From assembly GCF_016432865.1 (NCBI RefSeq), contig NC_067398.1, positions 744,001 to 808,000 of the forward strand: a stretch of DNA of 64,000 nucleotides. The letters are read 5' to 3'. Source of the DNA: Antechinus flavipes (taxonomy: Eukaryota). Position 1 is the stretch's first letter, and every line of letters starts with the position of its first letter. The notes below the pieces were generated by a model that saw only the letters and a list, made by a program, of their open reading frames with translations, was not told the DNA's origin and ran no database searches. Both the position numbers and the translations under genes were made by a program. Positions 9,384 to 9,590 of the stretch are shown in pieces.

Positions 9384-9590
9384 CTTGCGCAGAGCCTCCC
9401 GCAGGGCCCGATGCTCCTCGGTGTAGCTCAGAGGGTCAGCGCTGCCGGGGCTGCCTTCCAGGGCGGCCTCAGCGGAGGCGGGACGAGAGGAGCAGCGGCG
9501 GGTGCCCCCGGGGAGCCGCAGGCAAAGCGCCTGGGCCACCGCCCGGCCCCTCAGCCAGCGCCCGGCCAGCGCAGCGCAGCAGCGGGCCAT
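9384..9590 (-). CDS. First coding exon of a probable mitochondrial acyl-CoA dehydrogenase (gene continues leftwards; later exons not found in window)
   Basis: ATG at 9590; 69 codons MARCCAALAGRWLRGRAVAQALCLRLPGGTRRCSSRPASAEAALEGSPGSADPLSYTEEHRALREALRK ending at an AAG|GTAGAG phase-0 donor; Arg-rich, acid-free N-terminus (presequence-like); YTEEHRALREALRK resembles the ACAD N-terminal helix; lies in a CpG island. Confidence 0.6.

Follow-up and report, generated by a model that had tools for sequence, protein, structure and literature searches.

Textbook lists of vertebrate acyl-CoA dehydrogenases (ACADs) are based on the human and mouse genes, and the question raised by this locus in the marsupial Antechinus flavipes is whether a 69-codon open frame lying just beyond GNG11 is the first exon of an intact ACAD gene and, if so, where else among vertebrates that gene occurs. 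The window analysed here is the whole stretch of 64,000 nucleotides (contig NC_067398.1, positions 744,001 to 808,000, forward strand). A first-pass annotation of this DNA had described an ATG-initiated exon of 69 codons with an Arg-rich, acid-free N-terminus of 40 residues and a phase-0 splice donor, situated within a CpG island, and each of these features could be confirmed at the following positions:

9384..9590, minus strand: coding exon 1 (very probably) of the ACAD gene, with the conserved start ATG at 9590, 55 presequence-like residues and the first 13 residues of Acyl-CoA_dh_N
9378..9383, minus strand: splice donor GTAGAG, phase 0, after the Lys69 codon, read from the sequence and used by the RefSeq model
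1..9377, minus strand: the part of ACAD intron 1 that lies within the window; the whole intron is about 9.85 kb, with its acceptor 462 bp past the left edge
9591..9867, minus strand: short interval separating the ACAD ATG from the poly(A) signal of GNG11, presumably the promoter and 5'UTR of the ACAD gene, from sequence comparison
9250..10250, no strand: CpG island covering ACAD exon 1 and the 3' end of GNG11 (GC 0.69, CpG o/e 0.61, 72 CpG)

Translation of the minus strand from 9590 to 9384 gives an ATG followed by 68 codons, the 3' end of which reads YTEEHRALREALRK, with GTAGAG next, such that the peptide terminates in SYTEEHRALREALRK immediately before the donor. Its first 40 residues include eight Arg and neither Asp nor Glu, the first acidic residue occurring at position 41. 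Searches were performed with the natural stop-to-stop frame in which the exon resides (267 codons, 10091..9291), within which only residues 168-236, i.e., the exon itself, were scored. The exon peptide matches the N-terminus (residues 1-68) of the "probable acyl-CoA dehydrogenase 6" of the Tasmanian devil, Sarcophilus harrisii, at 84% identity (E 3.7e-23, 100% coverage); this protein (XP_031807092.1, 439 aa) carries the N, M and C ACAD domains of Pfam. Further matches are to a devil isoform and to a wombat (Vombatus) protein (P0005) at 64% identity. The 90% identity cluster of the devil protein also holds a protein from A. flavipes itself, XP_051833102.1, a 607-aa "probable acyl-CoA dehydrogenase 6", residues 168-236 of which are identical to the exon in the window. 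Indeed, residues 1-236 of this model correspond letter for letter to the window frame 10091..9384, after which the protein continues with IIDKEINPFVDKWEE. The ACAD gene is thus already known as a RefSeq annotation in A. flavipes, and the type of gene that the first-pass annotation had guessed at is the exact name that NCBI gives in Antechinus flavipes, Sarcophilus, Vombatus, Monodelphis, koala and bilby.

Searched by itself, the 69-residue exon peptide, which is of insufficient length for a Pfam score, yielded no meaningful match in Pfam or the PDB and none among proteins of 38-120 aa, and two matches to repeat proteins among 1.8 billion protein representatives were rejected as spurious. Because the exon alone lacks a Pfam, PDB or representative match, its identification rests on its close marsupial relatives and on the RefSeq model. 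On these grounds we conclude with high confidence that the minus-strand segment 9590..9384 is coding exon 1 of the A. flavipes "probable acyl-CoA dehydrogenase 6", a mitochondrial-type ACAD.

The exon had been called an orphan, which holds for the window but not for the gene. No further ACAD exons were found within the window on either strand, either among stop-to-stop open reading frames or by tblastn with the devil and wombat proteins (window positions 6331-6368 were masked or avoided in later searches). However, the contig encoding XP_051833102.1 (L003) is identical to the window across their overlap, and it places exon 2 at 10855-10974, equivalent to window positions -463 to -582; exon 1 merely appears orphaned because exon 2 lies beyond the left end. 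After the terminal LRK of exon 1, exon 2 of XP_051833102.1 begins with IIDKEINPF. On L003, the Antechinus gene comprises nine coding exons over 34.7 kb, to which 605 of the 607 residues map; all introns are bounded by GT-AG and the frame terminates in TGA, so the disruption of downstream exons that the first-pass annotation had raised as a possibility is not observed. The devil gene likewise has nine coding exons, and an exon-by-exon comparison of the two species yields 93.4% amino-acid identity and a dN/dS of 0.27 over 436 codons. The border of exon 1 recurs in other species: it falls after RK in the devil, hoatzin and catshark, in phase 0 in the latter two, and the pattern typical of the orthogroup, with a phase-0 exon 1 that closes on LRK and an exon 2 that opens with II(D/E/N)KEI, was found when hoatzin and catshark were compared.

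Family assignment of the whole protein relied on database sequences. XP_051833102.1 scores above the curated cut-offs for Acyl-CoA_dh_N (9.9e-28, residues 224-337), Acyl-CoA_dh_M (2e-20) and Acyl-CoA_dh_1 (3e-37), and the first of these domains begins at T224, the T of YTEEH, inside exon 1. All of its PDB matches are ACADs, the best being the bacterial structure 2pg0 (253 bits), and the best human matches are ACADSB (211 bits), SCAD (195), LCAD (191) and IVD (187). The SEPGAGSD motif is intact, with GVSEPGAGSDVAN aligning to the same motif in 2pg0 and 3r7k. At the helix-G position preceding the conserved Arg, the protein has a Glu (QEERL) where ACADSB and butyryl-CoA dehydrogenase have Gly in the alignments, and an Ala in IGAGADE stands opposite the Glu that both of these enzymes carry in the J-K loop (IYEG). 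The catalytic base of ACADs occupies one of two positions, and the helix-G Glu serves in LCAD (Glu291) and IVD (Glu283) (PMC10925408); the combination of a helix-G Glu with an Ala in the J-K loop is thus an arrangement of the LCAD/IVD type, the catalytic position being E462 of XP_051833102.1 (E295 when counted from the Met at 9590). With three domains, a catalytic-base Glu on helix G and the SEPGAGSD motif, the gene product has the hallmarks expected of a member of the ACAD superfamily. Two more specific assignments were rejected: an LCAD (ACADL) orthologue, in view of an LCAD score below those of both ACADSB and 2pg0, and ACAD12, which is an unrelated rodent ACAD10/11-like gene.

The marsupial members of the orthogroup have diverged from those of other vertebrates. 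In a tree of 31 sequences, the marsupial proteins form a single clade (support 100/100) among the vertebrate members sampled, and the marsupial stem measures 0.69 changes per site, versus 0.24 for the bird stem and 0.21 for the frog stem. When six marsupials were compared with 24 non-mammalian vertebrates, 145 of the 166 columns that are invariant in the latter were found unchanged in all six marsupials, and seven were changed in all six: G134L/M, G141L/I, A263V, W298S/N/A, E313Q, A369V and V400A (numbered from the Met at 9590). In addition, V142, which adjoins Gly141, is replaced by Leu in four of the six marsupials. The segment containing both glycines reads GNIRCGGIPMAIGVQ, and its dasyurid version reads GNITGLGIAMAILLQ; this segment presumably corresponds to the helix-E region, which in MCAD and VLCAD lies at the bottom of the acyl pocket. 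To judge from these substitutions, the replacement of Gly134 and Gly141 may have changed the acyl pocket, and given the long marsupial stem and the changes at otherwise invariant residues, the activity of the marsupial enzyme may differ from that in other vertebrates.

The same divergence could be read in another way, namely as the mark of a gene that in Antechinus is unexpressed or in decay, with an exon that survives as a relic of recent common descent. None of the sequencing runs listed for this stretch is recorded as RNA. The length of the marsupial stem, the seven altered columns and a dN/dS that is not very low would all be compatible with decay, but the ratio remains well below 1, each of the nine exons retains an open frame, the splice sites are canonical, a stop codon is present, and the great majority of deeply invariant columns are unchanged, with both the catalytic Glu and SEPGAGSD kept. 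Moreover, eight marsupial species, spanning American and Australian lineages, have annotated gene models with ACAD domains, the majority of which are full length. The retention in marsupials that had been proposed at the outset is thereby borne out. We therefore regard decay as very unlikely and treat the ACAD gene as intact and constrained.

The window contains several landmarks that fix the position of this gene:

10092..10217, minus strand: GNG11 last coding exon (ending in EDPLVKGIPEDKNPYKEKAGCTVS, TGA at 10094..10092), the upstream same-strand neighbour of the ACAD gene
9868..9873, minus strand: GNG11 poly(A) signal AATAAA, from the sequence and from comparison with the devil, in which it is also present
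about 20.1 kb, minus strand: GNGT1 last exon, placed by window gene order
57447-57599 and 59847-59999, plus strand: TFPI2 Kunitz exons, placed by window gene order

The order of genes in the window is hence TFPI2, GNGT1, GNG11 and ACAD exon 1, and in Antechinus the ACAD model starts at the point where the G-gamma gene, encoding 73 aa, stops. In the devil, two G-gamma genes are followed by the ACAD gene and then by a 116-aa SNARE on the opposite strand; the turtle has a G-gamma gene, the ACAD gene and a 115-aa SNARE on the opposite strand, and the hoatzin has the same order and a SNARE of the same length and orientation, preceded by TFPI2. The ACAD coding start falls 477-845 bp after the G-gamma stop in Antechinus, devil, turtle and hoatzin, and no neighbours were found within 10 kb of the ACAD gene in the toad and catshark loci. 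The order of G-gamma, ACAD and BET1-like SNARE in devil, hoatzin and turtle upholds the earlier placement of the gene in the GNG11-BET1 interval, and the Antechinus gene has the position characteristic of its orthogroup, directly downstream of G-gamma and convergent with BET1, which itself lies beyond the Antechinus window. With the ACAD ATG only a few hundred bases past the GNG11 stop in the marsupial, bird and turtle loci compared, it may be asked how so short an interval accommodates both the promoter of the ACAD gene and the formation of the GNG11 3' end.

Several other observations concern this region. A gene model from the eel Synaphobranchus kaupii (KAJ8334190.1) joins a G-gamma domain (residues 48-94) to an ACAD, showing that the two genes adjoin in a teleost as well; the model represents either a read-through transcript or the merging of two genes during annotation. 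Between GNGT1 and GNG11, positions 17612-19453 are occupied by a tandem array of very high GC content (about 0.83) with almost no T on the plus strand; its copies align to each other in many registers, at 83-87%. In the spacer between TFPI2 and GNGT1, two direct copies of a segment of about 5.3 kb (26228-31505 and 36235-41479), 10 kb apart and about 87.6% identical, are to be explained by a dispersed repeat or by segmental duplication.

The proximity of GNG11 also bears on where translation of the ACAD begins. The RefSeq model starts further upstream than the exon described above, within the following segment:

9591..10091, minus strand: N-terminal extension of RefSeq XP_051833102.1, 167 codons, most likely spurious (GNG11 3'UTR and spacer); the open frame begins right after the GNG11 TGA

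If the RefSeq start is right, translation proceeds from 10091 to yield 607 aa, the Met encoded at 9590 is internal, and 708 nt of exon 1 are coding. The frame is indeed open from 10091 to 9384 and is so annotated in XP_051833102.1, but the model start is an in-frame ATG directly after the GNG11 TGA, and the conserved AATAAA of GNG11 (9873..9868) lies within the extension. In the devil, an in-frame TAG occurs 35 codons upstream of the ACAD ATG and the GNG11 stop is in another frame. Indels between Antechinus and devil upstream of 9590 measure 5, 15, 2 and 1 nt, among others, and are not all multiples of three, whereas those within the exon are of 6 and 3 nt in the alignment; the interval 9591..9867 is about 93% identical to that of the devil and contains frame-breaking indels. 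Of 2000 dinucleotide shuffles of the 501-nt extension, 365 (about 18%) were equally free of stops, and the 167 residues contain no Pfam domain. Finally, the devil and wombat models begin with MAR(C/R)CAALAGRWL, and the dunnart model begins a few residues inside that motif. Based on the devil comparison, the phases of indels, the shuffles and the related models, the ATG at 9590 is therefore a better start than that at 10091, leading to a predicted product of about 440 aa; the 167 open codons most likely represent a chance open frame in the GC-rich 3'UTR of GNG11, and we consider translation from 10091 to be very unlikely. A false N-terminus of 167 residues in RefSeq would hide the presequence from localisation predictors. 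Annotated starts vary in the neighbouring gene as well: devil GNG11 (L001/L002, 6048-9524) is 99 aa in one of two assemblies and 83 aa in the other, versus 73 aa in Antechinus, turtle and hoatzin, and this discrepancy probably reflects further start-codon artefacts in GC-rich DNA.

GC-rich DNA does hold long open frames, and the exon does lack Pfam and PDB matches of its own, but the view that exon 1 is a chance frame in the 3' flank of GNG11 with an accidental ACAD-like motif is refuted by its identity to the spliced N-terminus of XP_051833102.1, its resemblance to the devil N-terminus, a donor position that is the same in shark and bird, and indels that remain in frame, leaving it virtually no credibility.

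Taking 9590..9384 as the first exon of an intact ACAD gene, we turn to its distribution. Its orthologues include zebrafish zgc:85777 and the Xenopus "acyl-CoA dehydrogenase (3J649)". The best 120 homologues of the devil protein derive from marsupials, squamates, turtles, a crocodilian, birds, amphibians, the coelacanth, and ray-finned and cartilaginous fishes, at 63-86% identity, with members of the orthogroup from sharks to birds being 64-73% identical to the devil protein; neither a eutherian nor a monotreme is among these best 120. An ACAD with an active site of the LCAD/IVD type thus occurs from sharks to marsupials, with no eutherian copy among the best matches. A single "Mustela" label appears among the homologues, and it belongs to a tilapia accession; in nr, two tilapia proteins (CAI5690417.1 and CAI5690418.1) bear "Mustela putorius furo" as an additional label, which looks like a labelling or contamination artefact and might be taken in error for a eutherian copy. 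Outside vertebrates, a 695-aa protein from the millipede Chamberlinius hualienensis (P0006) shares 62% identity with the devil enzyme and, devil proteins aside, outscores every vertebrate homologue; HpaB_N is among the entries in its precomputed Pfam list.

Human ACADs in the PDB match at 187-211 bits, compared to about 600 bits for sharks, and are distant paralogues of the gene. In a table of the mouse and human loci, GNG11 is directly followed by BET1 (PMC7642923). Loss of the gene in eutherians, as had been suggested for this locus, is a well-supported inference that fits the composition of the best-120 list, the human ACAD bit scores and this locus table. The accompanying suggestion of a lineage-specific activity needs to be corrected: the gene is ancestral to jawed vertebrates, with eutherians apparently lacking it, and not a lineage-specific gain.

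As for what the enzyme does, a literature search recovered no paper on the function, substrate or loss of this gene. The orthologue in a notothenioid fish (zgc:85777) was detected in a proteome of muscle mitochondria (PMC9330239). The Antechinus leader is presequence-like in composition, a statement that refers to its Arg and acidic residue content and not to a predictor score. In this reading of the locus, exon 1 supplies an Arg-rich, acid-free leader resembling a mitochondrial presequence, together with the first helix of the ACAD N-domain, and it is joined after Lys69 to the eight exons that follow beyond the left edge. Translated from the Met at 9590, the protein has about 440 residues and the three ACAD domains, and it shares with LCAD and IVD a catalytic Glu located on helix G; most likely it is a mitochondrial FAD enzyme that introduces an alpha,beta double bond into acyl-CoA, with ETF receiving the electrons. 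Mitochondrial import, FAD binding and electron transfer to ETF are the most likely properties in light of what is known of the family, and the gene is presumably expressed in Antechinus. A broader and rather doubtful extrapolation is that this is a twelfth mitochondrial ACAD of jawed vertebrates, linked to G-gamma within 1 kb in birds, turtles and marsupials (and adjoining one in the eel), which was lost on the eutherian stem and re-tooled in marsupials. If this were true, there would be a class of acyl-CoA that marsupials and other vertebrates oxidise and for which placental mammals either use a different route or have none.

Comparison with known ACADs delimits what is shared and what is particular to the Antechinus gene. 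XP_051833102.1 represents the same gene with the same donor at 9384, and differs from the present reading in beginning 167 codons further upstream. The devil protein is the closest counterpart from another species, being 93% identical, encoded by nine coding exons, opening with the same start motif and occupying the same place between GNG11 and BET1. Both belong to the marsupial branch of a vertebrate orthogroup that includes zgc:85777, from which the marsupial copies are set apart by their long stem and by the replacement of Gly134, Gly141 and Val142 by Leu, Ile or Met. Human LCAD (ACADL) and IVD, two mitochondrial enzymes about 430 aa in length, resemble the Antechinus protein in carrying their catalytic Glu on helix G and not in the J-K loop, but they are encoded at other loci and, at 191 and 187 bits versus about 600 for the shark orthologues, are only distant paralogues. 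ACADSB (PDB 2jif), the best human structural match, shares the three-domain ACAD fold and aligns over its full length (211 bits), but its catalytic Glu lies in the J-K loop (IYEG), at a position occupied by Ala in the Antechinus protein. The closest known structure, 2pg0, also aligns over its full length and has in common with the Antechinus protein the helix-G Glu (QQERL/QEERL), with Gly at the pocket position; it differs in being bacterial and in having no leader peptide, and the title of its PDB entry names no substrate.
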